This document shows, one piece after another, positions 10,675 to 61,496 of a stretch of DNA of 64,000 nucleotides (position 1 is its first letter; every line of letters starts with the position of its first letter). The DNA lies in contig FLMG01000549.1 of NCBI GenBank assembly GCA_900088475.1, positions 1 to 64,000 of the forward strand, in the 5' to 3' direction. A program made the translations under genes and the position numbers. Under the pieces are notes generated by a model. It did not search any database, was not told the DNA's origin, and saw only the letters and a list, made by a program, of their open reading frames with translations. The stretch comes from Hyphochytrium catenoides (lineage: Eukaryota > Protista > Hyphochytriomycota).

Positions 10675-12555
10675 TCAAGGGGCAGTGGCCTGGACCTGCT
10701 GGACAGCTCGACGCTTGAAGCGGATGGTAGGGTGTCCTTGCGGACCAACTACCATAGAGGTATAGTCATGCTCGGGAAGCTTGTCCTCACCCTTTTCCAT
10801 GTCGAGCTTCTGCAAGAGAGACACCAAGACAGTCTTCAGTTGCAAGTATGCATACTGTTGTCCCACGCAAGCATGCATGCCACCGCCGAAGCCAATGAAC
10901 GTGAAGGGCTTCTTGTCCTCCTCTCTGTCTGGTCCAAAGCGATCCGGATCAAATATCTCAGAGTCCTTGAACTCAGGGGCTACCCTGCCCCCAACAGCTG
11001 GAGATACACCCACAAGATGTCCAGCGGGAATTACCATGTCCTTGTAGTAGAGATCCTTCCTTACCCGGCGAAAGAGAAAGATGAGTGGAGGGTGCATCCG
11101 CAGAGTCTCTTTGATGCAGCGATGAAGGTACTGCAGCTTGCCGAGGTCTTCGTACGTGACTGGGCGGTCTCCCACCACTTCTGCAACCTCCTTCCTAGCC
11201 TTCTCCAAGGCACCAGGGCTGTCCAGTATGTGTAGCAAAGTCCAGATCGCAGTGGTGGAGCTCGTGTGCTGTCCCGCAAAGAGCAGCGCGATCATAAGTC
11301 CCGCGACGTGCGAAGGCGGAATTGGCTCCTTTGTGTCCTTATATGTTGCATCCAAAAAGGTCTGCAGAATATCCTCTTTCTTGACTCCCTCCTCTCGCCG
11401 CTTCGCGATGACATTAGCAAAAAGCTTTGTGAGCTCCTCACGCGCTCTGTCTCGCTTCTTGTGGAGCGGAATAGGTAAGTACGGGAAGAAGACTCCAACA
11501 GGTGTGCACCCATTGTCAAGGTCATGGTAGAGAGAGGTGACCTCATCGTAAAGGCTCTCCCTAATCTCGTCGCCCATCAGAGCACGTGCTGCACAATTCA
11601 TGACCAGCTCGACAAGGAACTCCTTGAGATCCAGGGTGCCTTCTTCCGGTAACGTCTCTACATGGGCCAAGGTCTCCCCAATGATCTTGTCCACATAGGT
11701 CTTCATCCTGCTATTACGAAGACCCGTTGCCATTATTTGCATCTAGAAACGAATGCGCACGACCGTCGGTGGGTCAGTCATTATCAATGAATACGCTATA
11801 CACAGCAAGATAGGACCTCAAAAGTCGGACTAGGGCGTAATGCAAAGCAAATAAGGATTAGCAGAGCGCAAGAGCTACTTAGGCAACGGCAAGTTTTGAA
11901 GCTTGGCCAAAGGTAACGGTAGCACATTTTCTACCCACGAAAGAAGCATAGGCAGATAACAGAGCTTTTTACCTGCTGTAGCCTCCGTTTTAGGGGCGCA
12001 TCAAAAACGATGCCCTCGCCAAAGACCGGCGTCATAAACTTGTAGGGGTCCCCTTGGTCCAGCTCTTCGTCCGTCGCTCTGAACGCAACCGCCTGCGCTT
12101 CCGGACCCACAAGGAAAGTAATCTTCTCAAAAGCAAAGTCAAGCGTGAAGATATCCCCGTACGCATAGTACACTGTGATTCAAAAAGAACAAAATCGGGA
12201 GTCCCATAGGGCGAGTTATAGTGGTTAGATACTCACCCTGGAGAGTTGAAACAGCTCAGAAATGTGTCAGTGTCTTACGTTCTGTTATGTAGCCCACTGG
12301 TGATCGGCAGAAGTTTAGAAAGGTGCCCAAATACGGGATGGTAGTATGTACAACGGGGGGGAGCTTCCCTTGCACCTTACGCCCACGCATCATCACGCTC
12401 ATAAGCACCGCCACAGCAGCCACCACGAGGACGGTGACAATAATAGGGCGAAAGTTCTCAGCGAAGATTAGGGAAGCATCCGCAAATACATTCTCGATTA
12501 CCGTCCGCATGGTCTCCGAAGAGATAAGGATCGCAACAGAGAGGATCAGCATCAT
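10675..12555 (-). CDS. CYP51: Sterol 14-alpha-demethylase (cytochrome P450 CYP51), 3 exons; start uncertain
   Basis: YKFMTPVFGEGIVFDA (SRS1), I-helix ALLFAGQHTSSTT, KETLR (ExxR), heme motif FGGGMHACVG, and an N-terminal membrane anchor followed by LPP. Confidence 0.96.
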
Positions 12556-25870: not shown

Positions 25871-26935
25871 CTAGTCAAAGTTCTTGTGCTCCATATCAAT
25901 CCGATCCTGCAAGCTCCATTGCCGCATGAAGATAAAGCTAAGCAGCAGCTTAGTGTAACTCTTATAGGAATAAAGGCCATTATAGTACTCCGGAGCCTCC
26001 GCCCTCACTTTTGGGAGCTTGTTCCACGGCACAGAGGGGAAATCGTGGTGCTCATTATGAAAGCCTATATTGAAGGCAACCCGATTGAGTGGGCCATAGT
26101 AGGAGTACGTCGTCTGAAAGGGCTGGGTCGGGTAGTGTTCCTGAATCCATCGTGCGCCTAGGGGATGGAGCCCAATGGAGAAGAGAGAGGCCAGTAGCAT
26201 GTAAACAAGCACTTCAAGCCCCAGATAGTGCCAGATGAGGTAATTACAGCTTAACCCTACTGCGGTATTTGAGGCTATCCAAAGCAGTTCCTTCTTTGAA
26301 GGGATTTTGTATGTGTAGATGGCCAGCCGGAAAGACTGAATGAGCCAGAAAAATGCAAGCCAGAGTGCCTTCCGCACAGGACTATTACCCACAAATCTGG
26401 CCTCTACGTCGGTGGGAACGTCAGGATCTCGGTGTACCTGGTTGAGTTCAATGTGGTGCAGAATGTGATAAAAGCGGAAGGTCATCGCTGTGGGGATGAT
26501 GTGTGGGATGTTAGAGAAGATCGCACCGGCCCGATTTAGGGAGACGCTCTTGAAGACTAGATTGTGCGCGAAGTCGTGAATGAGAACCCAAAGGGCATGG
26601 TCAACGACCGCTCCCACAAAGTAGCAGGAGAGTAAAGCACCCCAGATGGGCAGGTAGGAGGTGCTCAGAACGGCGACCACCAGCTGAAAGGTCACCAGGA
26701 TCACGGAGAGGGCGGCAGTGAGTGGATTCCTTCCACAAAGGCTGGCTATACTAGGATGTGACTTCAGGATCTTTGTCCTCCTGTCTCCATGAGGATGGCG
26801 CTTCCTGCTTTTCCTCTCCATCTCCTCCTCCTCTCCCTCAGTAGAGATGCGATTCTTGTCGGACTTCATGGTGGAAATCTCCGAATGAAGAAATGCAGCT
26901 TTGGAAGCCGCGGACTTGCAATCGAGCTCAACCAT
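25871..26935 (-). CDS. DEGS1: Sphingolipid delta-4 desaturase (DES1/DEGS1 family), intronless
   Basis: HPHGDRRTKILKSHPSIASLCG N-terminal motif; His boxes HDFAH, HILHH, HNEHH; GLHPLGARWIQEHY and TYSYYGPLN. Confidence 0.95.
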   Translation of the reverse strand: MVELDCKSAASKAAFLHSEISTMKSDKNRISTEGEEEEMERKSRKRHPHGDRRTKILKSHPSIASLCGRNPLTAALSVILVTFQLVVAVLSTSYLPIWGALLSCYFVGAVVDHALWVLIHDFAHNLVFKSVSLNRAGAIFSNIPHIIPTAMTFRFYHILHHIELNQVHRDPDVPTDVEARFVGNSPVRKALWLAFFWLIQSFRLAIYTYKIPSKKELLWIASNTAVGLSCNYLIWHYLGLEVLVYMLLASLFSIGLHPLGARWIQEHYPTQPFQTTYSYYGPLNRVAFNIGFHNEHHDFPSVPWNKLPKVRAEAPEYYNGLYSYKSYTKLLLSFIFMRQWSLQDRIDMEHKNFD

Positions 26936-27289
26936 CCTGACACCTGATCCCAGTTCCTCAACTCGGTTAGCTCTGGGGTGATAAGTCCACTGCAACGTGG
27001 AGCCAACTCGGTGAGTGTGATGTGTGCGGCTTAAAGGAGAATAGCTACTGGCTTAGCCCCCGCAGATCCCAATTATGCTGACCACAAATAGAGCTGAGAT
27101 TTGCTGCGCTAGCAGGCCTGTTCTGTCCTGTCCAGAGCTTCCTGAATGAAGAGGCATGCACTATGTCCTTTTGAGTGACGACGAGTTAGGAAAAGACAGA
27201 TTCACTTCTGTGTAGCTGCTGATCGAGAAGACCAGAAACGGGTCACTCGGCACAAGATGTAGAGCTCACTTATCTACAAAGGCAAAGCT

Positions 27290-36018: not shown

Positions 36019-37992
36019 ATGAATAACTATCTCCAGGAGGGTCGAGCTCGACTGGACGGAAACTCGGCCCTCACTCCTCGGCGGGAGCTCATAGAGGACA
36101 TCATAGCCATTGCTAGCTGCACTGATGTCAAAAAGCTCAAGGTGGACAAGCTCATTAAAGACCTACGGGACCTAACATATTTCTCGACCTCCACATCCAG
36201 CGATGGCTTCAATGGTAACTTCGCTCTGGCTATGGTGCTCCTACTATCAAAGCTCAAAGACTCAGCGGATGAGAAAAAGGCAGCTCGCCTGGCACAATAC
36301 TTCCTCCAAAGTGTCACATCGGAGATCCTGGCAGGAAATATCGAAACCCTGAACAGTGACGGTAGCGTCACCCCTGTACGAAACCTACTACCACCCATTT
36401 TGGCAAGTCTGGAGGAGAACGACCTTATGTTAGACTTTCGTCCACGTAAAGTGGCCTCACTTCGGGTGTACTCCCGGCTATCGCATGCTTTGGATCAAGA
36501 AGGAAGAGTGCTCAAAGCGCTAGGAGCAGGTATCGCCCAACTAGCTCCTTTAGGGAGTTCCCGCATGACGAATAAGAAGAAGCCCAAAGAGAAAAAGGAT
36601 TTAGATGGCGTTCTTGCCAGCTCTCCTGGCCTATACAGCTCTGCACGACATGGTTTTTCGCACACCGAACACACGCTCTCATTATTACCTCTTTTGGTGG
36701 AGGGTCTATCTCTACCGGTTGCCGACGCCACTCGGCACATACTCGCCACCCTAATCAAGTTAGCTCAAGAGGAACCTGAAGAAGTCTATCGAGCTCTGCA
36801 ACCGAAGCTACCAAGGTGTCGCGAACTCTTCAACCTCGAGGATTCCGTGGCTGTTATCTATTTCGTCAACCTTTGTACCGTTTTGATAGAGGTCGCAGAC
36901 GAGTCCTCAAGAAGCACCCTATTAGACATTATCCTTGGTGTTATCACAGGTCCGCCCTCAGCTATCACAAAGGTTGTCTGTTTGGGCGCAATACGGCAGG
37001 TATTGACTGCTAAGAAGTCGGTTTTGAATTATGGTAACCAGGAAAATCTTCAAATGGTCAAAAAGATGGCTTCAGTGGTCGTCCAGCTGCTCAAGGAGAC
37101 GAACCATAGCGTGGGAACGTTACAGCCAGCTGTAGCGGAAGCTTTTCAGGCATTAAAAACGCTCGGGCTTTATCTGGATAAGCAGGCTCTTGAGAACGGA
37201 GGACCAAAAAATGACAGTAAAGTATCACTAGTAGAGGTGACGGAGCTAAGTTCGCAACTGTATTCCCTTGCAAAAGGCATGGTGTCAAGTTGTCAGGAGT
37301 TTCCTGCTCTGCTCTTCTCCTGTTTGGATGCAATGATATGGTTGCTCCCAAGAGAGGTCGGCGGAAATTCCGCTATGGAATGGCAAAAGCTTGTGAATGA
37401 GGTGATGACGGTGCCTTTGTCTGCACCCTTAAGATACAAGCTTGCTCTTTCCTGGAAAGAGAGAACCGTCTTAGCGGTACATCCACTCATGTGGAAGGGA
37501 GTGACAGATGTTTGCTGGCATTGGTTCTCAACAACTCCAGACGAGAAGGTTGGCACCTTAATGTTGACTCTTTATACTACCGCGGTGTTGCCGCTGGAAT
37601 CGGCACATCAAGTTTCCAAAGTCGGCCTATCAAAGAGCATCCTGTCCTCCATCTACAAACTGTTAGACTTCAGGCCATTACCAGGATGCAAAGCGGAGGT
37701 TCGCGATGCAATCAAGCGAACTCAGCGAAGGGCTTACTCATTCTTGGCTGAATATGGAAGATCATTGACAGCAGCTGAAGGAGATCCGGTTTCTATGAAG
37801 CCGAACACTAGTCCTCTTTATAGCGAACTCCTCCTCCGATTAACAGAAGTGGCTGCCTATGGGGACTGGGAAGCCAGGAGGCTATGTGCTTTGGCTCTCA
37901 ACAATATCAGCGAACCTTCATCACAACCAGTTATGAGCAGCTCTGAGTCCAACCCTTTTCAAGGTTGGACTATATCGGCAGTACTAGAATGA
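36019..37992 (+). CDS. ARM/alpha-solenoid protein, probable TSET complex large subunit TSAUCER (TASH3/TstB-like), intronless
   Basis: C-terminal blocks CLDAMIWL, IKRTQRRAYSFLAEYG and SPLYSELLLRLTEVAAYGDWEARRLCALAL align in order with plant TASH3 trunk motifs as I recall them (ALEALIWM, LQRLVQAAVWFLGENA, NPTLAGALTRLQRCAFSGSWEVRIIAAQAL). Confidence 0.6.
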   Translation: MNNYLQEGRARLDGNSALTPRRELIEDIIAIASCTDVKKLKVDKLIKDLRDLTYFSTSTSSDGFNGNFALAMVLLLSKLKDSADEKKAARLAQYFLQSVTSEILAGNIETLNSDGSVTPVRNLLPPILASLEENDLMLDFRPRKVASLRVYSRLSHALDQEGRVLKALGAGIAQLAPLGSSRMTNKKKPKEKKDLDGVLASSPGLYSSARHGFSHTEHTLSLLPLLVEGLSLPVADATRHILATLIKLAQEEPEEVYRALQPKLPRCRELFNLEDSVAVIYFVNLCTVLIEVADESSRSTLLDIILGVITGPPSAITKVVCLGAIRQVLTAKKSVLNYGNQENLQMVKKMASVVVQLLKETNHSVGTLQPAVAEAFQALKTLGLYLDKQALENGGPKNDSKVSLVEVTELSSQLYSLAKGMVSSCQEFPALLFSCLDAMIWLLPREVGGNSAMEWQKLVNEVMTVPLSAPLRYKLALSWKERTVLAVHPLMWKGVTDVCWHWFSTTPDEKVGTLMLTLYTTAVLPLESAHQVSKVGLSKSILSSIYKLLDFRPLPGCKAEVRDAIKRTQRRAYSFLAEYGRSLTAAEGDPVSMKPNTSPLYSELLLRLTEVAAYGDWEARRLCALALNNISEPSSQPVMSSSESNPFQGWTISAVLE

Positions 37993-39638: not shown

Positions 39639-40314
39639 GGAACCTAATAAAAAACGAGACCTCATTGTGTATGTGTCGTTCCTACAAAAGCCTTGTAACA
39701 CCGAACAGTAGCAGTGGTAATGGCCTCATGAAGGTGGAATACAAAAGTAATAAGGCAGCGTCAAAAATAGTACTCCGCTCCTGGGGGAGTGATGAAACTT
39801 TTTATTCATCAGGCTTCTGAATCAGGAAGTAAAGATGGGTGGGAAGCGCCAGCGACCCACAGATTCTGTCAGGGGGTGGGTGGGTTGGTTCACCCTTGAA
39901 ACTGTCTCTACTTCACAAGGTGGCCGCGCGCCGCTGTCACCCGGCCACCAAGAGACAACAAAACAAAGTGAGAACAGGCGTGAAGAGCAGCGAGCTGATG
40001 ATGATGATTCCTCAATGAAGCCCCTGAGTCATAATGTAGCTGCAACCTCTCTGACCAAAAGAGTTTTGCTTTTCGAGGCCCGATAGCAGCACGACAATCT
40101 CTACATGCAGTATTAGCGGACAACCTCAACCAAGCTCCAATACCAGCTTTTCGCAATCTTCATACAAGGCCCAACGCTTAGCCGTGAACTTGGAACTTCT
40201 TGACAAGAGCACCACCGATTCGTGGTCCCCTAAGCTGGCCCGTGTGCCTAGAGTCTATCGCCCACTGCCACTCGAGCACCGGTCAAGAACTCAATTAGCG
40301 TGGCGAAAGGGGTG

Positions 40315-41022
40315 ATGGAGGGATATTTGATCAAGTACTCGGGACTTCAGTTTGGGTACGATTTGACACCGCAGGGAGAACCTCATGTGGAGACATCGTC
40401 TACGTATCGGCTGAAGCAGTCTGTTTGCTATTTCCTTTTGAAGGATGAAGGACGGCTAGAATACTATGACGACAAGGGCGGTGCTTTAGTAGGCGAGTTT
40501 CAGATATCGGGCACAAGTTTTCGCACAAGGACACTGCCAGATTCAGGGAAACTGAAGCATGCATTTCTTCTCAAGTGCATCAAGGTTCAGCGTAATCCCC
40601 TGACCAATAGGGTAGTGCTCGGAAAGTCTAGCTGTTTGGCCCTCGGGGCGCCTAGCGAAGAGGAGAAGCGCAAGTGGCTATACAGCCTTAAAACCTGGAA
40701 TCGATCCTTTTTCAAAGACGGTGCCGCAACTGATGAAACGGTTATGTTGGCGCAGAAGTATGTGCTGATTGCTAGGGTTGGAGGTCGAGCGCTCCAGGGC
40801 CTGACATCCGCCACAAGGTCCAGCAGTTTTCGTGCAGCGAAGCTAAGTGACGTGACGATGGAGTCTCCGATTAATACTTGCTCGTCATCATCAACCTCGA
40901 GCGCGGCGGGAAGTCCTGAGGGAACTGACCAGAAAGCGAACTCATCGGGGCTGCAATCTGCTTCCAATAATGGGAGCAAGCGTAAGATTAGCTCCTTTCT
41001 TTTGGGGATGGGGAAGCGATGA
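40315..41022 (+). CDS. PH-domain protein with Ser-rich tail, intronless
   Basis: MEGYLIK (beta1), YFLLKDEGRLEYYDD, and LALGAPSEEEKRKWLYSL (PH C-terminal helix with Trp). Confidence 0.85.
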   Translation: MEGYLIKYSGLQFGYDLTPQGEPHVETSSTYRLKQSVCYFLLKDEGRLEYYDDKGGALVGEFQISGTSFRTRTLPDSGKLKHAFLLKCIKVQRNPLTNRVVLGKSSCLALGAPSEEEKRKWLYSLKTWNRSFFKDGAATDETVMLAQKYVLIARVGGRALQGLTSATRSSSFRAAKLSDVTMESPINTCSSSSTSSAAGSPEGTDQKANSSGLQSASNNGSKRKISSFLLGMGKR

Positions 41023-43251: not shown

Positions 43252-46200
43252 ATGGCGCATAAACAGCAAAAAGCTTCTACATCGAAAAAGGGAGCTGGCA
43301 AGGTCATGCACCTTACCTGTAGTCTTAATCCTTCTCAGCTTGGATGCTTACCTACCTGTTCCCACAGCCAGCAGACCCTACCAACGCAATGCCGTCGGAC
43401 TCCGTCGTTTCGCGGACAGGGAAGGTAAATGCCAAGGCTGTAGGTGCCACAGATGTGCTTGCATTTCTCATTGTGCTGCCTTCTACCTATAGGCCGCAGC
43501 CATAGCCACTCGATCTGCTTCCCCTCGACCTGTCAAGCATCCAGGGCCCTCACCAAGCAATCCATCAAGAAACCAGGTAGAGCCAGGATTAGAGCTATTC
43601 CAGTCTATCGGACGCCTTGGCAGCCATTCATTAGAGCTTCTCTTCTCTCCATGTCTCTGGCACGACTTCTCCCCCATCGTGCCTTTACACCCTTTTACTT
43701 CTCAACACCCTTCACCTCTCCCATACCTGCCCTATCGCCCGTCACTTTTACAGCTTCTCGCATTGGCATCGCCCATGGTCTTTCCATGTTCTTCTCTCCA
43801 ATAGCCCTGACCAAATTCAAACTGCTATCCTACATCGTTCAATCCCTACTGCTTAGTCCAAGCTTAGGGCCGCTTCACCTAGAGAGTCAAAGACTCTTGC
43901 AAATAGTAAGCTCAAGCCCATGGTGGCGCCCAAAAAAGATGATGACAAGAAGATTGTGACCACTCCGAGTGCTCGAAAGCGAGCTGCCAAACTTCCGCCC
44001 TCCGCAAAGAGACTCCGGGAAGGAGAAGACGGACGTTCTACCCCGGCTAAGAAGACCAAGGTGGCGGGGGTCCGAGCAGCCTCCAAAACTGCGGATGCCG
44101 AAACAGGCAAGAAGAGCACGAAAAAAGCAGCGAAAGGCAAAGCATCAAAACCTGTTATTGGAAATTCACAATCAAAGAAAGGGGTTAGTCAAGCAGGGTC
44201 AAAGGCCGCGCCATCTAAACTCCGGCCTGTCGAGGGGTCAGGCAAGAAAGGAAAGAACGCTGCAACTTCCACAACCCCACCTGCAAAGGCCCAGGACGGG
44301 GAAGGACTACATAAGAAGAAGAAGAAGAAGAAGGCAGTTGAACCTGNNNNNNNNNNNNNNNNNNNNNNNNNNNNNNNNNNNNNNNNNNNNNNNNNNNNNN
44401 NNNNNNNNNNNNNNNNNNNNNNNNNNNNNNNNNNNNNNTCAGGTCCCGTCGGTACACCTCAAGGTGAAGTGCATGAGTTCCAGATCTGGGAAGAGTGAGG
44501 GCTAGAAAGGTAGAGGGCACCAATAGGGAGAGGACCGTGGGGTGTTAGAGTCAGGCTGCCCACGGTGCACACGTTTATGTTGATAAGTGAGCTCTGCGGG
44601 AGGCTTGTTCCGGTAAAGTTAGGGTATCTGAACGGCACGTGGCAACCGGACTGTGCTCACATACCAAAATCTGTCAACAGGTGCATTGCAGGGTCGTCCT
44701 CAGCCTTGGCAGATGCCTGGCATGATGTCTGCGGGTGGCCTCATGAGTCCCATGGGCTTCCCATTGATGATGATGGGGACACCCACTAGTGGAGGATATG
44801 GAGTCTTTGGGCCTCAAATTAGCAATGGTGGGATGTTCATCTGCCAGTTCTGGGGCAGCTCTCTTAACATGGCGCTGCAACAGGTGATTTTTTTTTTATC
44901 TCTCCTACCTCGCCGTAGGTGCCGTCCATTTCTACCTACGGCTATCCTGCGCGTGACCGCTCAGCCACCTTGATGTGGGTACTGTGCTACTGACCTATGG
45001 GTGTTTACATGTTGGGCAGGTGGATGACAAAGTGGCTATATCAGGTTTCACGAAGACAGAGACCGGTGGCATAGGAGAAGCAGAGGCAAGTGGGAAGGTG
45101 GCGGTTGGGGACATCCTGGTGGCTATTAATCATAATGCCAATGGAATGGGCCACTTAGACACAGTAGTTGAGGCGCTGAGGTCATCACCCCGCCCGGTCA
45201 TCTTGACTTTCAAAAGGTAATATTGAGCTCGTCCATTCTCCTTTTACTGCCTTTGTCTCCCACAACTTTCATTTGGTTGACTGTTGCGTTCCGTTTGTTT
45301 CCACACCCAATGAGATGGAGATTTGACAGTTGACCTGATACTGTCGTCGTTCCACTGGTTTAGGATGGCCTCAGAAGGAGCTCCACAGATACCCGAGGCA
45401 GTAGGCTATCCCTCTTTCTACCCCCCACCTGCTGCTGCTTCCTACCCCACCTCCTGGGCTTCGGCGCTTCCATCTGCTCCATCTAATCTAGTCCCAGTCG
45501 CGGGGCCCTCAGGGGCTGGTATGCCCTCCTCGGGTGGGATGCCCACGAATCCCTTATTGACCACAGCGGAAGTGCCAGTGACGAACATGAAGAGTAAGGT
45601 AAAGTCCAAGCCTTCAAAGGCCAAAGCTAAGGCAAGCAGACCGTCGACACCTAGTGGTGCGAAGGTTTCTCGTAAGAGCGACCCTGTCAAACAGAGGCCT
45701 AAAAAAGGACCCGCCGCTAAGGAGAAGGCCAAGGGGTCAAAGCAGCCTGGAAAGAATTCTAAACTTCCTGGGGTACTTGAGAGAGAAGCACAGTCGAAGC
45801 CAGGCCCGAAACCTCAGCGTCTTGTTAGCCAGAATCAAAAAGAGCCACCCTCCAGCAGTCAGGAGAATTATGGCAGCATCACTAAGCCTGACGTTTCAGA
45901 AATGTCTGGGAGCACCAAAATCGCTCCAACAAGTGCTGCATATTCTCCAGCGAAGCCTTCAAAGCAACCCTCAGTATCCAACACTGGAGGTGGGAAGACG
46001 TCAACTCCAGCACTAAAGCCGGGACCACCGCCTGTAAATGTTTCCAAGTTGACTGCTAGTCCGGCCCCTAAGGCAGCTGACGTCAAACCCAGCCCACCGC
46101 CGGCCAAAAGGCCACTAGCTCCTAACCTTGGCTCTCCGGTCTACCAACCAGAGACAGTATCTGCACAAGTCACGGTATGTAAAGGAAAAATGAGGCTCGA

Positions 46201-47194: not shown

Positions 47195-50100
47195 TTATAG
47201 AGATGTTCTCCTGTTCTTCCGAAGTCTCATCCTGGATCCTACCAACTGACTCTCGTCGATGTCGAGGATACCATCCATTCCAAAGTCTTCACCACTCCCA
47301 GCATCTAGAGAGGATCTACTAATGGGAGAGTCGTAGGTGCCTCGAACTTTGGAAGGAAGGTCTCGGAGAGCCTATAAGGAACAACAAAGCGCCAAAAAGG
47401 TGTGGGGAAGGTCAGATACAAGTCGCAAGGCAAAAATACATCAGGACGGTCCAAGACTGATTTCGTTCATAGAGTAATAAGTTGCAAAAGAGCCTAGAGT
47501 CCTTGGCCCACGATTGCGGAGTATTGATTAAGAATGTGCGTGGACAAGTGAATGAGGACCCTGATCACGAGCACGCCAATACCAGGCCCATGAGTATACG
47601 CGGAATCTCAATTTATGCAAGGTATGGGTAAAGTAAGGGAAGAGGTGTCAAAAGGCCCCGCACTCCTACCTGTTCTTCCGTAACTCTATCGGACAACCAA
47701 CAAATGAGGGCCTTCATCACAGGCTGGTAGTTCTCTGCCAGCTCTACCAACTCTTCCCGATGCATATGAAGAAGAATTGTAGGCGACAATGCCACCGCGG
47801 AAGTTAGGTAGGTTGCTTCAGGGACGATGGACATCTCCCCAAAGCAACCCCCCTTAGCTAGGGAGGCAACGACTGTCTTTGGAATGGTCGGAGGGACGTC
47901 GGACAGCAGGCTTTCAGCAGAGCCTTTTGATGGGGAAGATGCCAATAAGTTTTCCCTGATAACCGATATCTCTACTGCTCCTTCTACAATTATGTAGATG
48001 TACTCAGCAGCCTCTCCTTCGCAGTAAATCATCTCCCCTGCTTCGTACATGCGCTCATGAGAAATTTTTGAGACAATTGTCACCTAAACGCAGAAATGGT
48101 TAGACCGATAAAGGAATAGAATGAGGCGGGAGGACGGCCGGGGACTGAGGCCCCGATGCTAATAGAAGAATCAGCCTAAAGCTGTAGACAGACTACCGCA
48201 AAAAGATGTACCCTTGCTGGAGACACCCAGTAGTGCAGGAGGGTGTTGGTAGTACGAAAGGTTAGCTATTAATTGAGCAACGAGCAGCCAGCATTATTGA
48301 GCAGAGATAAAACTCTGGGCAGAGAGTTCCTGTAAAAGTTCAGCAAAAGAATACAAAGGAGCCTTGAGGTATAGAAGATTCTGTGAAGCTTGGAGTAAGA
48401 GGATGGCGAGGGACTACGAGGATTATGAGACCTGAGCATCATTTAATGCCTGGAAGAGGGAAGAACCCTTCAGACAGAGGCATTTTTCCAAGGTAGAAAA
48501 CGAGGCACCAGGTCCGGCGAGCTGGTATTTTATATTTGGCGAGGGAACTTCGCCGTCCGATATTTCAGGATTATGAGAAGTTGAATAACAGTCATCAGGG
48601 CTTAAGGAAGTAGCTCCAGCCATATGGACTGAGCGAGGGAGCCCAAACTGCAGTATTACAAAAAGAAGTGGGGAACATGAATAAGTTCGCTCGATGAAGG
48701 CAAAAGACGGACTCTACCCAAGTCCGAGGGAATATGTCTCCCTTGCGGGGCTAACTTACCAGCAGTCCTGCCGACCGATCGTGTGTCTGATGGTGCCTCA
48801 TCAGAAGGAAACTATCTTGTCTCTCCAAAGCGGAATGGATGGGACGGGCTGTCACCGTTAAGGATCGCGGCCGATTGTTCTTACAACCGCGGAAAGCCAT
48901 TATCAGGGAGGTAAAGAAGTCGGAACATGGACAAGGAAGTAAGTCAGTCTATCAGTCCAAGATAGGTCGAACCAGCGGCAGTGACCTTATTACCAGTAAG
49001 GGCTGACCGCCTTGGTAGGGACCAAGTTATAACCTTTCATTAAGCCCCTCCCTCTCGTTGTCAGCTGTTCATACCTTGGCATCCATACAGACTGCCTGGT
49101 TACCATAAGTGGGAGCCTTTGGCGGCTCCCACGCTCTATCAGCATCACCAGAAGTCATCTTAGTAGGGCTACTCTGCGAATGACCTCGTCCCTCCTCTTC
49201 ATGGTTCTGGACTGCGGACGTCTCTGCGGCTTGTCGGCCTTCCAACTTCCTGTACGTATCTGCACCGAAAAGAGATCTTTCGTAGCCTTCATGAGTCAAA
49301 CTCACTCTGAGGATGGTGCCCTTTTCTCTGACCCCAGTCTACTCAGAATCATGACGAGAGCACAGATCGCATTCAACCGCCTTCAGAAAAGGTACCCAAT
49401 CAACAAAATTCGAGAACGCAGAAGTTGCGTTGACACCAGTCTCCTGATCACTTGCCCTTCTTACCTTCTGCGGCTCCGACCAAGAACTTCCAGGAACGTT
49501 CTAGCCGCCATATCCACCTTAGCGGCGAGTCTTACTTTCTGGGTTAAGTCGCCACTCTCAGGCTGACGAGAAACGACGCTCTGTTGCCTTATCATGCGGC
49601 TCATACGCTTGTTTTGCAAGTCTTGGAAGGAGCTGCAGAACGGAATTTTGGTTTCAGACTTGGCGGAGTACGGAACATCATTCCATTCCCATGTTCCCTT
49701 CATCTCTCGTTCTCCATTATAGATAAACATGCTGCCAGGAGAGCTACCTCACTCCGGATTAAGTCTCACTCAGTCATGGCAGAAGAATTAGGCTGGTTTT
49801 GGATATGGGCCTCCCTTGGTGAGGTTACCTCTTACCTTCCAGTGGAGGGCGACACCCTGGGTTGATGGAGGCTAGTGGGGGTCAGAAGTGGAACTGCTGT
49901 ATAAGGAGTAGGATGTTGGTCTGAAAAGTTTCCCTCAGCATATGCTTCTATGTCAAGCTGGTCTGACCTTCAATTGGCATGGTGCTGTCAGAGTCGTTTA
50001 CATTCCTAAGAACCTCAGCCTGCAGCTGAGTTGTGAGCATCCCCAACACGCCCCGTGTGATTGGGACTGAAGATGTCATTAACTCTTCGAGGGCAGTCCT

Positions 50101-53100
50101 CGTGACCCCAAGCAAAATGCAGTCGGTCAGAGCGGTCACCGAAGCTGAGTAATTGCCTTTCGACAACCGCGGAGAAGACGAATTGTATGTTATATGGAGT
50201 CATAGGCGGCAGAGACCCCAAGACTAAGCAGATAGATGAGCACTAGAGTGATTCTTAGGCATTGATAGCGCGCAGTAAGGACCGCACATAAGAGATGGGA
50301 GGAGAAGTGCCTCACCAAGGTGGGTAGAGAACTGGGCGAGTGCCATATCGCCAACGCAGTCACCGGTCCCAGCGACAGCATAGACCTGAGGCCCGCGATG
50401 AATCTTTGCTTCCCCAGAGGCGATGACGAACCTATGATGGGCGAAGAATAAGGGAACTGGACTACATTCAGCACATAGGTGATAAACATATCAACGCGGT
50501 GACAAAGAAAAAAGAGGCTTTAGAGGTGCTTGTGATGTTCAGCAGGAGTCAAAATCACAGGTAGGGGAAGAGAGGAAAGATCTTATCCGTACATATGGGA
50601 CGCGATAGTCCCTTCCGCGATAAAGGTGGTTCCCGCGCACACGTTTTTCTGAGTCACTCGAGGGGCCACGCTTTCAAGAAGCTCCTTGACCTATCGGATA
50701 AGAAGGAAAAGTATACAGGGAGATAGTACCATGAGACTTGTACAAGGCGCTAGGGATTTAAAGCGCAAATGATAGGACTACTTTAGAGAGGTGACGATAA
50801 CGCTCCATTCGCCACACCTAGTTCATAGCGACGGATGAGTAAACCTACCTCGACGTTTCTGAAGACAGGAGAACTTCTCATAGAGTGAGCAATCTCACAT
50901 GAGGTTAGCCAGTAAAAATTTTCATCTTCCGCATCTCTGGAAGTGGATGATAAAGGAGGCTGCACCTCGCTCTTTTCCAGTATTTCTCGGAGAGGTTTTG
51001 ACATCCTCTTCATAACTTCCGTCTTCCGCCTGCTTTCTTGTTGTAGAAGGGCGACGACTTGTTGTTCTCCATCTAACTTCTCAACTGGGAGATCGAGAAG
51101 AAGTTCAACTTCTGAGGTTTTAAGTGCAAACTCTACCGCTAGAAGTCGCAATAGCGGATCTGCACCTGCGATCCAGGTGGAAAGCAGGGAGGCTTTTGCC
51201 TACAATAGAGAGATACCGAAAGCAAGATTGAACCGCGAGTAAGAGAGGGTATAGTAAACGTTCAAAGTACCGCTTAGCTCATGCTCTAGCTGGTTGCAAA
51301 GGAGCAATAGAGAGGTCAACATCGAGGTCAATAAAGCTTCAGTACTGGAAAGAAAAAAAAATCCCCAAAGCTTATGTATGACAGGCAATGTTTTACCTCC
51401 TTACTATCATCGAGGACAGGATAGAGGTCAATCGCCTTTGCAGCCAGCCTCCTACGGTCCCGCTCCAGCAGAAGGGGAAGGAGGAGACTTCGCTGGCGCT
51501 TGGTCACAAGACTCTCAAGGACCTCCTGCACACTAGACAACACCTGGGACGCATAAAGGTTCAGCAAGATGCGGGCAACCGGTCTATTCGGCCATGGTAG
51601 CCATGGACATGAGGGTAAAACGCTGAGGGGAGGACTTAAAACTGATAGATCTAGGGAAACGATACAAAGCAGGACCGCAGTAGCCTGGCCTCCATCGGGT
51701 AACCGAATCACTATTGTCTCACCTCCTGAGAGTCAGTGTTGATAGCTTCCAGCAGAAGATTAACGTTGAACTGCTTTGGAAAATTTGTGGAAAGTAGTCT
51801 GAAGGCCACCCGGACAGCAATCACACTGATCTGCTCGATATATGCAAGGAGTAGAGGTAGCTGAAGAGCTTGCTCCTCGTCGCTGCCTTTCATTTCACCG
51901 CTTCTTATCGGGAGATTTAATGGGGCTAGACGGACTCCTCGTGCAGAAGCTAATCTTCCACTTATTTCCTCATTCTCAGTGAAGCCTTCTTTTGATAGCA
52001 AAGGTCAGTTGGAATAGAAGGTGCAGCCTCAGGGAGAAGAGAATGGCGCAACAGACAGCAGAGAGTCCTATAAACGACTAGCTTGATGGACACAGGAGAT
52101 TATCCTTCTGCCCTTCCTCTAACTTGGACATCTCAAAGTTTCACTCGCTTCCCCGTCTCTTGTGAAAAGCTGCGATAAATAGTTCAACAAACCTTCTCTT
52201 CCAGCTTCGTCAAAGGCTTTCCAAAATTTCCAAAATAAATAGTGTGTGTGCTTGGCAAAGTAGGCCGTCCGCAGAGCCACAACATAAAGAGCCTGCAGTC
52301 GCCGTATCTGCTCGCCCGAAAGGTCTGTGCACTCTGTTGTTGTCAGATACTTCACCAAGGCTCCAGCTACTTCGTCTGATATGATCAGACGGCGCTCAAT
52401 ACAAGCCGCGACTCTATCGCTCTCCTTAGTAGAACCTTCGTGGCTTTCCAGTTCCCTTTCGCACTTCCCTTCCCTTCTCTGTATCTCCTGCGGTTCTTTG
52501 CCTTGCGGATCGATACTACAGTCATCCGGCTGCTTACTGCTACATCCTGATATTCGTCCGGCTGATGTCCGTTTTTCTCGCTGTATACTTCTATCTGCGT
52601 CAAATTCCTCCTCGTGCAAAATTTCCAGCATAGATAGGAAAGTGTCTATGGTCGGACGCGGAGGAAATATACCGGTAGAGAGCATTCGGATGGCCCCTAT
52701 GACCGCCTCAGGAGTGTCATAGTTCCCGTCCTCCCAGCTCAGCTCAGTCGCTGAAGCCCATGTGGATGAGGCTTCTTTCTCTGTTCCGCCAAGGCAGGAA
52801 CTTCGTAAGCCTGGGCGGTGAGAGAGACGAAAGTCGCAGTGAGAAGAAATTCACTGCGATGGGCAAAAACTTGGGGAAGTTGCATGGGACAAAGATGAGA
52901 GTTTGACACCTCTGAGAAAACGAGAGCAGGTGAAGCGTCCATGCCTAGCCCCATTCTTGTAGGATTGCATCATTGTCCCATTACCTTTTCGTTCTTCGTC
53001 AGCCATGTCACCAGCCATCTGCTTGTGGACTGCTTGGGTTAGAAAGGGAATGAGATAGCGCCAGACCTGCACCGGGTCCAACTGAGAGAGCCCAGTTATA

Positions 53101-56100
53101 GCTGACGCTCGGAAAAAAGGGTCGGCAAGCTACGAATGGAGTGAGAAAAGATTCTGTGAGGTGGAGACAGCTGCAGATTACAAATATTCAAGAGAATCAG
53201 CAGAGATCCCATGTCACCCAATGCCCTGTATCTCCCTATGCTTGTCTGACATGGGGTTGACGAGAAGATAGTACCCAAGTGATGACGAACTTCGGGCTCA
53301 ATAAGTCCTCACGATCATCCAACGCTAGTGCGGAAGAATTACCTTCTCAACTAACGCCGGTATAAGTATAGGTGACAACCTAGTCGGTGAACGACATACA
53401 TCCAGCGCGGCGGCAACCACTCTCTTCGTGGGATGATGAAGCAGATACACTAGATATCCGTTGCTGATGAGCTCTGGAAGGAAACTGCTCACAAGCTGGG
53501 TAGAGGGAACAGCAGAGAAGAGATTGTCAGTTTATGCTGCAATGTCTCGGGAAGCGAGAGAATAGTGGCCCTTTGGGGAATAGAAGCGGGCATGACCAGA
53601 AGCCAACTAGCCCATGTCGAGAATTTATCAAAGGCTTGTAGCGAAAGGACCCAACAGAACATCATTAATAAAGGTCTAGTGGTGGTGCATAAGATATCTT
53701 CGTGCTTGAAAGCTGCCGCATGTGAAGCTGACGGATAACTGAAGATATGGTGCGTACTTGCCGCAAGAAACAATAATTAAATTTGGCATTTTAGGGGAGG
53801 TTCCTATTCATTACCTGCAAGCAGATGACCTGACCCTCAGGATCATCATCATTGTGTAATAACCTCTGTATGCAAAGGTGTGCACCTTGGTGCATGAAGT
53901 GCGTTAGTTTGAGCAGTCCTACCGCGGCTGCCGCTCGCACTCGCTTTCTATTTGGGAAATTTGTAAGTCCTGAGCGACCTTGGCGTTCCCCTTTACAGGG
54001 TGGAGGAAGGTCTAGAGAAAAGTGTATAAGTTCCAGCTGCCTAACTCGAGAAGAGGGAGATACTAGGAAAGGAGACCTCTAGACATCCATATGAAACGTG
54101 CTACATAGCAAATGCAATTAACAATAGAATGATCGTGTTAGACGGTAAGCGGCCCATGCCTGACATGGTGTCACCATCAGGGTTGGACGGGTGGGAGGAT
54201 GAGGTAGTAGGTGAGACTAACCATCGGCGGCCAGATAATGCTCCAGACAACTTCTAGCGGCCTCATGTTCCTCCCAGCTGACTCCTGAGGTCATATGTCC
54301 TAGACATTGAGGCTATCAGTCTCCAACTGTTCCATAAACTTGGACAATAGTGGAAGTACATTGTTCAGGAAAATTAGGCCTCAAAGTTTGCAGGACAAGA
54401 TAGCACCCGCAAATGAGGATTTGGTATCCCGTTAGCCAGTTTTATGGTGTAAGACAGCGCAGATGTTGAGGCCAGAAGAGATAAGTCTCACCTAAAGCTA
54501 TCATTGCAGCGACACCTATACGCGGCCCCGTTGAGACCATGCCTTTTGACTCTGCCAACGCAATGAGGTCTTTTAACGTAAAGATTCCTACAAAACACAG
54601 GCCTTCAGAGTCACCTAGAGCAATGACCAGACTTTCTCCTATCTACCATGCAGCCGTAAAAGTATATCCAACTATAATAAAATGAACCGTCTCATTCTGG
54701 AAACTCCTTGTCGGTACTTTAGAACTAAAACCCAGGGAAGGTGGTGCGCCGGAAAGCGCAAATTTTCACCAAAGATGGTAAACAGCAAACCCACAGAGGA
54801 AAGTCTAGCAGGTAAAAAGAAAAAAAGGTCGCGATGGACCATTACTGAAACAAACTCACCTTCATTGACAAGCGGGAGTGATCTTCCATCTAGATCACCC
54901 TCTGCAGAAAGACTCAGCATGAGAGCTAGATTTCTTTTATCATAAAGCCTACCAAAAGCTCTTGGAAGGACAGAGTCTTGCTCCTGGGCGTAGAGGATGG
55001 CCTTTGTGTGGAGTTCCAAAATTCGTAAACGGGAATGAACCGGCGTTACTCTCTTGTCAGACTCTCTACTTTCATCTCCTACTTGGTAGAATAGGTCCCG
55101 CAACTCCTTGCGAAAGTGAGAAATTAGCTCTGGAGAAAGGGTCTCCAATATGAACCTATCATCGAGATAAATAGACAGGAAATCACAATTAGGCGCGGGT
55201 CTAGGCTAGAGGAGAACTTAGGATTAGAGTTAGCTATAACTCTCACAAGGTTGGAGAGAGAGGCACCCAGTGAGATCAGCCAAAATATGAAGGGCCAGTA
55301 TTTGTTTACGATATACTTAGTCTTGGGTTTCAAGCCAAATGAGGTTCCAGGTCCTATGAACGACGACAGGGAGAGGACAAAAACTTTTACCTTTTCTGGT
55401 TGGTATTGCCCTTCCTCAGGGTTTCTCTGACCAAAGCGACCTGGTCGGCAGAGATATCTAGTATTGGTGATTGGAAGTCGATATGTCCACGCTTGAGGGC
55501 GGAGTAAAACTCCATCGCATATGCACGAGTGGCAGGGTAGGTATCCACCTGGGACGGGTGAAATGCGGGGTGCATATTTGTGATCAGAAGAGAAAAAGGG
55601 ATTGGTGCTCTATCACTACTGAGGATGGTGGTGGGTGAACTCGACTGATAGTAATCTCAAGTATCAGTTAGGTGTGGAAGCTAAGGTGGGGCACAGTTAG
55701 CAGTTGACAGGTCTCACCAGCCAGAGCAAGCCCAAAACTCCTATTAGAACCCCAACAGGCCGGGCGTCTGCAACAAATGTGGCCAAGACTAAGGATAAAC
55801 CCGCTCCTACCACCTAAGTGATGGAAAGTTAGAGAGAAGGTCAGCGACGTAGATGAGGGTTCTGTTCTCCCACCCTCCCTCAACATACCCGTGAGAGGGA
55901 TCTAAAGTACCCTGTTATAAAGGGTTTGATTGTGACTCGGTCCTCCGTACTAAGAGGAAGCCAAAGGAGTTCCCGTGTAGTGTTAAAAACAGCATATGTG
56001 GTCGCATTGTACAGCGCCCGGCTATAAATGTAACAAATCACAGAAGTTTACATTAGCAGGTAAGGCGTACAGAGGTACCAATCTAGAGAGCCCTAGCCAA

Positions 56101-57672
56101 ACCTTCCAATTAGCACTTCCACGGAAGGAGACAGCGACGTGAAGGTGCCGAATATGAAGATTGAAAAAGGTAAGCTGGCTACTCCAGACATTACTCCAAA
56201 TCTGGCATACATGGGACCTGATCAAGGCAACAATGAAAGCTGTGTAAGACAATACCGAACACAAGCCAAGGTTCTAACACTACCTGCCGCTGCTTGAAAG
56301 GGGATCATAAGGCAGCTCTGTAATCCATTGATGATGCCTGGAATAAAGGAGTCAATGCGCGTTGACTTCTCCTCTGGATGTACGAAGCCCTCCAAGATAA
56401 GGGACAGGCACAAAGCCCGGTGGGTGTGCGAGACCAGGAAATATGGTTTTTGACACAGAACAGAGAGAATCTCACCCAAGGTGCGCTTGACTGCTGTCTC
56501 GTTATAGGCTGAGAGTATGGCGAACTGGTTGAAGTCAATAAGGACGCGCTGGAATGCAGTTCCATAAATTAACACCCTCCATAACTTTGCGCAGTATCAC
56601 CCAAGCTTACCGCTACAGTCGCGCAGAGCTCAAAGATGCACAGGTGATAAATATAAGGCCTCTCTCTGATGACAGACCATAAGGACATCGGCTTGTGACC
56701 ATCTAGATGACGGCGGGGAGCTACTAGGCGCGATTGTTAGTTCTGTTTGCAGAAGAAATGGCATTCTCAATTTCTCTTATGAACTTTAATCTCACCTTTG
56801 CTAGCTACTCGATGTGTGGGAACGGTGGAAGAGCTATGGGCTGACGTGACGGCAGGGACACCAAAGTGGAGTATTGTACCCATGAAAAGACACATGCCTA
56901 CGAGTGGTAGAATTATTGGAAAATGCGCTATTCAGCCTGACACCTAAGCAGCAAGCGGCACGGAATCTCACCTCCCATGAGCAAGAGGTTACTTCTCGTC
57001 TCAAGTTGCCAGTCTTCTAGATAGCGCACAAGGTAAAAGCCGGTAAAGAGGGTCCCGACTGTGGATCCCGTGCTGATAACTCCAAAAAAAGCTTTGCTCT
57101 CCCTCACCGTAAAAGATGCGCTGCCGATGCACAACAGGAGTTAGGTTGAGTGATCGGCTACATCATTTCCCACCCGTGTCCTCCAAAAACCTGCAAAAGT
57201 CCCAGAATTGCTGGCCCAGAAGTACATTCGCAATCTCCACTGCAATGTAGACACATGCAGGCGCAAGGGTAAATGATCTGTCTCGCTCAGCATATAGCCA
57301 GGCCCAAAGAAAGCCGTACAGAGCAACAATGAACCCGCACAGCCATGTCGCCACGCAGAGCTAGTTGCTTCCGTTAGCAAAGAACGGCAAATGGCTACAT
57401 ATACTTGATCGACCCACCGAGCCATAGGACTGCGTTAACGTAGCAATCCATTTGTTAACGTAACCTGAGATAGCCGCCACCACCAAAATGGCATAGGAGA
57501 TCTTATCCCTGCCATAAGACTTAATGAAGAGTGTATCTCTGGTGATAAAACCTAGAACAGCCAAGGCTGATTGAATAAATAAAAGAAAGATGAAGAATAG
57601 GATGATGATTGGCGTCTTCAGACTCGAGGGCCGATCTTCGGCAGTTATCCTCTCGGAGTTGGTATAGCCCAT
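47195..57672 (-). CDS. NTT/Tlc-family (Npt1-like) MFS transporter fused to HEAT repeats and two cyclic-nucleotide-binding domains; many introns
   Basis: TM part: GFITRDTLFIKSYG, VYIAVEIANVLLGQQFWDFCSASFTVRESKAFFGVISTGSTVG, VLIDFNQF, ARFGV, TRELLWLPL..KPFITG. Helical HEAT-like middle region. cNBD1 at ~50040-50900 (FIAEGTIASHMFVIASGEA..GDMAL). cNBD2 at ~47660-48500 (STLEKCLCLKGSSLF..IYCEGEAAEYIYIIVEGAV..FGEMSI). Stop at 47195. Confidence 0.85.
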
Positions 57673-60224: not shown

Positions 60225-61496
60225 TCACCCACCTTGTGATGCCTCCAATGAATCAAGCGCCTCTGGAAGCTCCCAGTCCAGTTGTCTACACAGCTCCTTG
60301 ACGATATCATTGCAGTTCCCCATGAGCTCTATGTCAAACTTGTTCGGCTGACCGACAAGTTCTCTGTTAATGAGTACTACCGGAACATGCGCAGGTGTCG
60401 CGAAGGCAATGCCTCTTACGGGATTGACTTTAAGCGACGAGCCCATCACAATGACAAGGTCTGCTTCCTTTAGGTCCTCTTCCAGCATCTCGTGGAAAAC
60501 TGACGGGAGCTTTTCGCCGAAAAAGATTATGTCAGGCTTCACTACCCCTACACCACACTCTTTGCACATAGGGACGCGCTGATTCATGACGTCGTCCCGA
60601 ATTGAATCCGAGTTGACTTTCAGCCCACATTCCATGCACGTTGCACTCTCAAAGTGACCATGGCAACGTAGGGCCTTCTCCCTACTCACTCCAGCTAGAA
60701 GCTCCAACCCGTCAATATTCTGTGTATAGTTCCGGAGCAGCTTTCCTTTTTCCTCCAGCATGCGAATAAAGTAGTGAGACGGACTTGGTATGTACTTTGG
60801 CGGCGATGCCGGAAATAGCTCTCTTGCAAAAGCAAAGAATGGCCTTGGATTTTCTCTGAAGAAGCTAAGGTCAAACATGCTCTGAGGGCTTGGCAGTCTA
60901 TACTCCTCTAAGCGGCTGTAGATGCCATTCTCTGATCGGAAGTCAGGGATGCCACATGAGACCGAGATACCAGCACCCGTTAGCACTAGTATCTTCTCAG
61001 ATGTCTTTAGGAGCTCAACCATATCGTCCAAGGTGTTCACCGACATAAGTTTCTCCCGTCCACGGTTCTGATATTCGAGCAGCCCGATGCCATGAGAAAT
61101 AATAAAAACCCATAGTTCCTCCTCAGACGGGCTGTGTTCGCCGGAAGCCACAGAAAGACCAAATATCTTGAGCAAGTCTTTAGGATTGGTTCCTTTCTGC
61201 TTCTGGCCAATAAGCCATTCGTGAAAGCTCATGCTTTCGTCCTCCGTCTCGTCCTCATTTGCGGAAGCGGGAGGCACCTCTAAATTTTCCACATTGTCCT
61301 GAATACTAGCATTCGAGTCCAGACCTGAGACGATACGATCTGCGCCATATTCCTCACTTTCCGAACCCGCTAGGCTCTCAAAGTTACCAGTAAGACTCTT
61401 TGAGCAAATGGCTTCTGCATCTTCCTCTATCCGCTGCCGCTTCACTAGGAGGTCAGGGTGGCCTTGGCCGGCTTCGCAGGCCCTTCCACCCTCCAT
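60225..61496 (-). CDS. SIR2: NAD-dependent protein deacetylase, class I sirtuin (SIRT1/Sir2-like), intronless
   Basis: GAGISVSCGIPDFRS, LRNYTQNIDGLE, CHG, CxxC..CxxC zinc module, KPDIIFFGE, GSSLKV, INRE. Confidence 0.96.
   Translation of the reverse strand: MEGGRACEAGQGHPDLLVKRQRIEEDAEAICSKSLTGNFESLAGSESEEYGADRIVSGLDSNASIQDNVENLEVPPASANEDETEDESMSFHEWLIGQKQKGTNPKDLLKIFGLSVASGEHSPSEEELWVFIISHGIGLLEYQNRGREKLMSVNTLDDMVELLKTSEKILVLTGAGISVSCGIPDFRSENGIYSRLEEYRLPSPQSMFDLSFFRENPRPFFAFARELFPASPPKYIPSPSHYFIRMLEEKGKLLRNYTQNIDGLELLAGVSREKALRCHGHFESATCMECGLKVNSDSIRDDVMNQRVPMCKECGVGVVKPDIIFFGEKLPSVFHEMLEEDLKEADLVIVMGSSLKVNPVRGIAFATPAHVPVVLINRELVGQPNKFDIELMGNCNDIVKELCRQLDWELPEALDSLEASQGG

Follow-up and report, generated by a model that had tools for sequence, protein, structure and literature searches.

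Fusions of a nucleotide transporter (NTT) domain to a HEAT-repeat region, with or without a domain for binding cyclic nucleotides (cNBD), are widespread in bacteria, and in some bacteria the cNBD is encoded by a separate gene adjacent to the NTT-HEAT gene (Major, Embley and Williams 2017, PMC5381601). The same study reported the fusion from oomycetes, where the cNBD is duplicated, and called it unique to oomycetes among eukaryotes; it counted 13 introns in the Pythium ultimum gene, inferred horizontal transfer at the oomycete base from a donor near Deltaproteobacteria, Bacilli or Marinimicrobia, and suggested control of ATP uptake by cyclic AMP (cAMP) for the family. A 2019 review likewise gave the fusion as exclusive to oomycetes among eukaryotes (PMC6995639). 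Here we analyze a minus-strand gene of Hyphochytrium catenoides within a stretch of 64,000 nucleotides (assembly GCA_900088475.1, contig FLMG01000549.1, positions 1 to 64,000; the window). We consider it likely that a deep-branching stramenopile encodes here, in one nuclear gene, a protein of about 1590 to 1760 residues, that the gene corresponds to the NTT-HEAT-cNBD-cNBD gene of oomycetes, and that it derives from a bacterial fusion by horizontal transfer. It is probably the first member of the published fusion outside oomycetes, and no mention of the fusion in Hyphochytrium was found in the searchable literature. A preliminary description of this DNA had implied novelty by treating the fusion as mainly bacterial, which does not hold, since the oomycete fusion with its duplicated cNBD and many introns is already published (PMC5381601, PMC6995639). 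That description would have been set aside had the architecture proved well described across eukaryotes; such a description exists, though it is confined to a single eukaryotic group. The fusion itself is thus already known, and the gain here lies in its distribution and timing.

The stop-to-stop pieces of the minus strand (n = 309) were compared with a profile of the bacterial NTT-HEAT-cNBD family prior to any gene model, all family profiles having been built from bacterial fusion proteins. The matches were collinear: eight pieces between 57603 and 55715 span profile positions 20 to 398, one further piece matches positions 404 to 448, two fall in the HEAT part, and two sets of three fall in the cNBD part. 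About 10 of the 309 pieces reached an independent E value (iE) below 0.1, with a chance expectation of about 0.1 for any one, so that the collinear matches are far more than chance would give. Searches by tblastn with bacterial proteins were too insensitive for exon placement at the locus, and a MAFFT alignment of the exon pieces to full-length bacterial rows was discarded because the pieces were smeared out.

Exons were chained by dynamic programming. Scoring combined codon log-odds derived from long open reading frames (ORFs) in the window with splice-site matrices, and profile-matched pieces received a bonus; the critical splice junctions were verified by direct reading of the DNA. The bonus tilts the resulting model toward profile-matched pieces, which exist in the DNA, in their order, independently of it. 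The whole coding span lies at 47613..57672 on the minus strand, running from an ATG at 57672 to a stop codon at 47615-47613 in about 36 exons. The model used here, model3, has 36 exons and 35 GT-AG introns (median 127 nt, range 48 to 348) and encodes 1763 residues, the figure of about 1590 to 1760 being set by the choice of linker exons between the two cNBDs. At full length it scores 279.6 and 334.0 bits against the bacterial family profiles. The NTT, helical and cNBD parts lie on the same strand, in the expected order, and can be spliced, as predicted, into one continuous frame. A gene model with self-trained splice matrices was rejected because it over-split exons and lost conserved ones, and some micro-exons in the models are clear bridging artifacts. 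In several introns (57361-57380, 56724-56743 and 55814-55833, minus strand), a branch-point-like CTAAC stands 8 to 20 nt 5' of the 3' AG.

These results bear out much of the preliminary description. The gene has many spliceosomal introns and eukaryotic neighbors, as a eukaryotic, intron-rich gene should; every motif that had been quoted (RDTLF, QQFWDFC joined to SASFTVRESKAFFG, RELLWLPL and STLEKCLCLKGSSLF) occurs in the spliced minus-strand reading; the architecture of an NTT/TLC-type membrane domain, a helical region and two cNBDs is supported by the profile scores, and the claimed kinship with bacterial fusion proteins by the collinear profile matches. The span then given, 47195-57672, contains the gene but extends too far, as nothing coding is seen in 47195-47612.

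The membrane domain is encoded by 11 exons that splice without a frame break into 472 residues, with 10 introns, mostly short (57 to 169 nt, 8 of the 10 at 57 to 81 nt). Exon 1 (57418..57672, all exons being on the minus strand) carries the start methionine, the first two transmembrane helices (TM1 and TM2) and RDTLF at 57540-57526; it matches the family profile at iE 4.7e-05 and fits the oomycete pattern VLGxxTRDTxF. TM1 begins about 20 residues after the methionine, much as in the oomycete proteins, which agrees with the earlier remark that no N-terminal targeting extension is present. Exon 2 (57191..57360; profile 88-132) encodes TM3 and TM4 and ends in QQFWDFC, and it has only one frame-compatible junction to exon 3 (56972..57120; iE 2.2e-04), which encodes SASFTVRESKAFFG...GSTVG and TM5, so that the motif QQFWDFC-SASFTVRESKAFFG, at 57213-57081, spans the splice. 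TM6 and the start of the central loop lie in exon 4 (56796..56897), whose junctions were read and whose loop length agrees with that of Phytophthora; the end of the loop and TM7 follow in exon 5 (56611..56723; sequence read, profile 216-243). Exon 6 (56476..56548; junctions read) encodes RVLIDFNQFAILSAYNETAVKRTL, which fits the oomycete RVLIDYRTLSILS, exon 7 (56284..56337) encodes GIINGLQSCLMIPFQAAA, corresponding to TM8 and fitting the oomycete LGAINGVQSFFMIPLQ, and exon 8 (56103..56217; profile 283-309) encodes FGVMSGVASLPF and TM9, where oomycetes have FGVMYGISTLPL. The strongest NTT signature, RALYN...TRELLWLPLSTEDR, is in exon 9 (55889..56021), with RELLWLPL at 55975-55952; this exon was tested via the stop-to-stop piece 55883-56047, which matches the family profile at iE 9.6e-07. 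TM11 and TM12 are encoded by exon 10 (55718..55813; profile 368-398, sequence read), and the juxtamembrane helix after TM12, beginning with VDTYPATRAYAMEF, by exon 11 (55391..55548; profile 404-448). For the last of these introns, with its donor at 55717, the acceptor at 55549 was favored over that at 55645 because the spacing of W..D...A.R..YAxEF then equals that of oomycetes.

When spliced, the NTT part aligned end to end with the profile of the bacterial P0082 group (164.6 bits; profile 20-474, residues 24-496), as expected of a 12-helix domain. By hhalign, the NTT part of a first model gave a probability of 99.6% and an E value of 1.3e-23 over 409 columns. A hydropathy scan of residues 1-430 found nine clear hydrophobic segments; three weaker stretches (about 150-175, 290-308 and 335-355), seen by eye and below the scan threshold, would make 12 helices. 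Against 177,635 PDB sequences, the piece with exon 9 had a sole match, to 9j3n_A, "ADP,ATP carrier protein 1" (E 0.038), and a bacterial relative, P0306, matches the structure 9j3j of chloroplast AtNTT1 (E 1e-15) and also 9j3n. The gene product resembles these carriers and those of Pfam PF03219 in its putative 12-helix domain and in the motifs FWxF...E(A/S)K..F(Y/F)..G.G and E..(Y/W)(I/L)PL. Its homology to stand-alone carriers is direct for one exon and otherwise runs via the bacterial relatives; compared with them it is distant in sequence and has a C-terminal tail of more than 1100 residues. Altogether, the matches indicate, at the level of sequence, that the N-terminal domain is homologous to NTT/TLC nucleotide transporters.

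We compared this domain with its counterparts in Saprolegnia parasitica XP_012200199.1 and Phytophthora infestans XP_002902644.1 (PMC5381601, supplement file 3), counting identities by eye. To Saprolegnia, 12 of 29 residues (41%) are identical in the block VLGxxTRDTxF; 24 of 39 (62%) in the block LLxQQFWDxC...FTVxESK..FG..GST.GT around exon 3, where the bacterial P0213 has 13 of 39; 21 of 39 (54%) in RVLID...ILS...LGxINGxQS..MIPxQ; and 47 of 89 (53%) in FGVM...LIGxRALYN...RELLWLPL...FRS..RV. The loop from GST to RVLID is 104 residues long in Hyphochytrium and 102 in Phytophthora, the last tryptophan and YAxEF are 16 residues apart as in oomycetes, and QQFWDxC...FTVxESK is common to Hyphochytrium and oomycetes and is not shared by bacteria. 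The comparison also confirmed the ten intron positions of the NTT part. To 141 bacterial members, in contrast, NTT-domain identity is 23% at most, which places the gene with the oomycete group, and the oomycete proteins appear, from these aligned blocks, to be clearly its closest relatives. Oomycete proteins such as those of S. parasitica, P. infestans and P. ultimum (PYU1_T010880) resemble the predicted Hyphochytrium protein in domain order, in their two cNBDs and in lacking an N-terminal extension, the compared NTT blocks show this identity of about 41 to 62% with equal spacing and shared derived motifs, and the oomycete genes have many introns as well (13 in Pythium). The Hyphochytrium gene differs in its length of about 10 kb, as against about 5 kb, and in its number of introns, about 35 as against 13.

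The bacterial relatives were reached through the last exon, among whose best 150 matches were two long proteins, P0114 and P0082, that aligned at their C terminus; in Pfam both have TLC, above the cut-off, together with HEAT_2 and cNMP_binding. Word-based searches from these two gave about 190 members, bacterial only, including Chloroflexi, Myxococcales/Polyangiales, Planctomycetes and Acidobacteria, several of which are labeled at source as "Npt1/Npt2 family nucleotide transporter" or "ATP:ADP antiporter"; 35 of the bacterial members have two cNBDs. One candidate for a eukaryotic member, P0337 (1423 residues), was rejected because it sits on a compact bacterial contig, and a search of bacterial genomes with the back-translated ELLWLPL exon confirmed nothing. 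The best whole-length bacterial matches are P0241, P0228 and P0082. The bacterial two-cNBD fusions (P0082, P0241 and relatives, some labeled Myxococcales, Polyangiales or Deltaproteobacteria) are collinear with the Hyphochytrium protein throughout the NTT domain, in part of the HEAT region and in both cNBDs, and bacterial fusions share the STxEKxxxLK helix ahead of the cNBD. The Hyphochytrium protein exceeds them in length by about 400 to 550 residues and has inserts in both its helical region and its linker; unlike it, the bacterial genes are intronless, and most two-cNBD members retain the arginine of the cNBD cassette.

Between the NTT domain and the cNBDs lies a helical HEAT-like region of about 760 residues (50937..55155), formed by 13 predicted exons and the first codons of the exon at 50849-50936, with most boundaries set ab initio. 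Where the bacterial profile contains Pfam HEAT_2, residues 682-795 match it with 27.7 bits; residues 1118-1263 align with the C-terminal helical part of that profile, and the helical C-terminal region together with the first cNBD (cNBD1) scores 83.1 bits against the P0082-group profile. Profile matches and reading placed the clearest HEAT-type repeats, RVRAAAAVGLLKL, LLHNDDDPEGQV and LLHHPTKRVVAAALDV, in three exons (53067..54011), and two to three such repeats are discernible by eye. For the whole middle region of an earlier model, hhalign gave a probability of only 29%, and a language-model look-alike search with one helical-region exon returned only weak rows of PIP kinases, under a useful score, which were disregarded. 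These data point to a long, divergent helical region with a few recognizable HEAT-type repeats, and its identity as HEAT is weakly indicated. Within it, at 52224-53340, all three DNA runs yielded paired short contigs of about half depth that differ by many single bases and 1-nt indels; they look like two haplotypes of a heterozygous stretch.

The tail ends in two domains. The first, cNBD1 (49968..50936), comprises four exons (50849-50936, 50593-50690, 50316-50431 and 49968-50156) with the cassette GDMALAQFSTHLGNYSASV and scores 55.8 bits against the family cNBD profile; Pfam cNMP_binding matches its single exons at E values of 0.0016 (piece 49948-50166, partial) and 0.0061. The second, cNBD2, begins in an exon at 48432..48647 (profile iE 0.025 to 0.16), whose N-terminal helix STLEKCLCLKGSSLF, at 48497-48453, fits the family consensus lstiEkvifLKqvpfF, confirming the proposal that a helix of the kind seen in bacterial fusions precedes this domain. 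The last exon (47613..48083; Pfam cNMP_binding E 3.1e-17) encodes the beta-roll and C-helix of cNBD2, a 27-residue loop insert, the cassette GEMSIVPEATYLTSA and the stop codon. For cNBD2, the P0082-group profile gave 37.4 and 24.0 bits and the family cNBD profile 17.4 and 29.2 bits. An AlphaFold2 model of the last exon (mean pLDDT 80.7) has eight strands and the C-helix, with the loop insert poorly defined, and its best Foldseek matches are the effector domains of CRP, NtcA and PKG (E 2e-09). Altogether, the results show two C-terminal domains with the cNBD fold, so that the feature of two C-terminal cNBDs that marks the oomycete subgroup is present in the Hyphochytrium model. An exhaustive search of 1.84 billion protein representatives with the last exon returned no close relative and no protein of the same organism, the matches being generic cNBD proteins and two bacterial fusions; a metagenome scan with this exon gave cNBD matches of only 22 to 27%.

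In known cyclic nucleoside monophosphate (cNMP) receptors, such as CRP, PKA and HCN, an arginine contacts the cyclic phosphate. Neither domain here has the intact cassette Gly-Glu...Arg-Ser/Thr-Ala of functional PF00027 receptor domains. The cassette of cNBD1, G-D-M-A-L...S-T-H-L-G-N-Y-S-A-S, contains no arginine and has aspartate for glutamate; in the alignment to the family cNBD profile, its arginine column is occupied by histidine, followed by a four-residue insert, whereas another placement of the gap would bring tyrosine into this column. This loss is not a modeling artifact, because a strong GTGAGG donor fixes the splice inside the cassette. In cNBD2 (G-E-M-S-I...A-T-Y-L-T-S-A), tyrosine stands in the arginine column and the Gly-Glu is kept. 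Among bacterial members, the cassette arginine is present in 65 of 109 single cNBDs and, in two-cNBD forms, in 28 of 35 for each domain. With the phosphate-binding arginine missing from both cNBDs, canonical sensing of cAMP or cyclic GMP (cGMP) is doubtful, and probably neither domain binds these ligands in the canonical manner.

In the DNA, cNBD1 and cNBD2 are separated by about 1.3 kb. Tentative linker exons (48760..49871) were placed there ab initio, without homology; alternatively, a single 1.3-kb intron (49967-48629) keeps the frame as well.

How these parts belong together can be read in other ways. The locus might hold two or more genes, for example an NTT-HEAT-cNBD1 gene that ends at the in-frame stop shortly after 49968 and a small cNBD2 gene that starts at a methionine at 48623. 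In the 1.3 kb between the cNBDs, homology gives no support and the exons are ab initio only; read-through of the donor at 49967 reaches a stop at 49950-49948, an ATG-initiated ORF runs from 48623 to 48423, and such a split would resemble the layout of bacterial operons with a cNBD gene behind the NTT-HEAT gene, adjacent separate cNBD genes being known from some bacteria (PMC5381601). Yet the oomycete proteins and the closest bacterial relatives carry their two cNBDs on a single chain, the cNBD2 exon comes directly after a strong 3' splice site at 48648, a frame-preserving path was found with and without linker exons, and 1.3 kb is little room for a terminator and a promoter; we therefore regard the split as unlikely. 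That the locus is a decaying pseudogene or a mirage of chance ORF pieces, as its very small exons and the bridging micro-exons might suggest, is hardly credible when the 11 NTT exons join in frame and align end to end with the bacterial profile and the oomycete proteins, the family motifs are conserved, and both cNBDs are intact, with cNBD2 folding with confidence. A further alternative accepts the gene and disputes its descent, attributing it to a separate transfer from a similar bacterium, or to transfer between oomycetes and hyphochytrids, and so denying orthology with the oomycete gene. In its favor, the bacterial donor could not be resolved: in a tree of 141 bacterial NTT domains, the Hyphochytrium protein forms a very long unplaced branch of 2.86 changes per site. 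The block identities, 41 to 62% to oomycetes against at most 23% to bacteria, the shared derived motifs and agreeing loop lengths, and the same two-cNBD architecture with many introns in both lineages make this alternative very unlikely, and the simplest history has the gene acquired once, by the ancestor that the two sister lineages share.

The preliminary description read the protein as a transporter-sensor ("transceptor"), and it is conceivable that both cNBDs bind cAMP or cGMP and thereby couple nucleotide transport to cyclic-nucleotide signaling, in keeping with the published suggestion of cAMP control of ATP uptake for the family. The intact cNBD fold and the Gly-Glu retained in the cNBD2 cassette are compatible with such a transporter-receptor. 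However, the residue that makes the phosphate contact in known receptors is replaced by histidine with its four-residue insert in cNBD1 and by tyrosine in cNBD2, although 28 of 35 bacterial two-cNBD relatives retain it in each domain, and the structural neighbors include NtcA, whose ligand is 2-oxoglutarate rather than a cyclic nucleotide. On balance, we find cyclic-nucleotide sensing by both domains rather unlikely. Several points weigh against the single-gene, oomycete-type fusion that we favor. The direct Pfam TLC match is that of the piece 55883-56047 alone (E 0.026; 13.8 bits, with the cut-off at 21), the match to 9j3n_A falling where Pfam TLC matches too, and Pfam HEAT (PF13646 or PF02985) matches no single exon. 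A single transcript is inferred, and the exons beyond the NTT part and the cNBD cores are predictions; the oomycete comparison covers the NTT domain only, with its identities counted by eye; and no measured substrate or functional study was found in the searchable literature for any member of the NTT-HEAT family.

The gene lies in a eukaryotic setting. G+C content is even across the window, at about 0.49, and the surrounding genes encode a CYP51 sterol 14-demethylase (long exon at 10675-11742, minus strand), a sphingolipid delta4-desaturase (25874-26995, minus strand; FA_desaturase 8e-24 and Lipid_DES), a PH-domain protein identified by Pfam (40300-41019, plus strand) and a SIR2 deacetylase (60228-61496, minus strand; 2e-60). 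Because these neighbors are ordinary eukaryotic genes, the locus is not bacterial contamination. The desaturase, PH-domain and SIR2 genes have long exons, unlike the finely split NTT gene. The H. catenoides genome paper reports CYP51 as present and a mean of 3.64 introns per gene. The DNA occurs in small sequencing runs of 2011 and 2017 that share one species label, and faintly in a soil metagenome; these runs are genomic, their contigs show no splice joints, and a search for RNA runs found none. Searched against 5.8 billion proteins, the CYP51 exon found no close relative and none from the same organism, the best match reaching 52%, Saprolegnia 48% and ochrophyte algae 47 to 49%. Two long ORFs, at 36019-37992 (plus strand, 657 residues) and 5136-6644 (minus strand, 502 residues), match no Pfam family, and no called-gene record was found for the product of the former. 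A run of N at about 44300-44450, an assembly gap, breaks a lysine- and alanine-rich ORF on the plus strand.

If the gene is the counterpart of the oomycete fusion, as we favor, its membrane domain would transport a nucleotide, or else an anionic metabolite related to one, across either the plasma membrane or an endomembrane. The tail, made up of the HEAT-like region and the cNBDs, would lie in the cytosol and be regulatory, modulating transport or binding partners; within it the cNBDs may regulate without a ligand or recognize some other small molecule. A fuller history, to which we give about even chances as a whole, is that the gene was received by the free-living ancestor that hyphochytrids and oomycetes share, rather than by the oomycete stem; that its original role was not host exploitation; that all of its approximately 35 introns, including the 10 in the 472-codon NTT part as against 13 in the whole Pythium gene, postdate the transfer; and that both cNBDs lost the cyclic-phosphate arginine to become ligand-free modules or sensors of another ligand. 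Host exploitation is an unlikely ancestral role because the gene sits in a free-living saprotroph, and the introns would all have been gained after the transfer because the gene is of bacterial origin.

If the free-living sister group of oomycetes has a copy, the horizontal transfer would date back to the ancestor that the two share, and the fusion could no longer be called exclusive to oomycetes among eukaryotes. Such a copy would also weaken a host-parasite role for the family, which is part of the case for these proteins as oomycete drug targets, and it offers a non-pathogenic organism in which the function of the family can be studied. Intron positions compared between this gene and its oomycete counterparts would reveal how introns came to fill a gene that began in bacteria, and if the transfer indeed took place in the common ancestor, with all introns coming later, the gene would be a natural record, with a date, of how introns are gained and lost. 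The advance is modest but real: the transfer appears older than earlier inferred, in a lineage that includes a free-living saprotroph.

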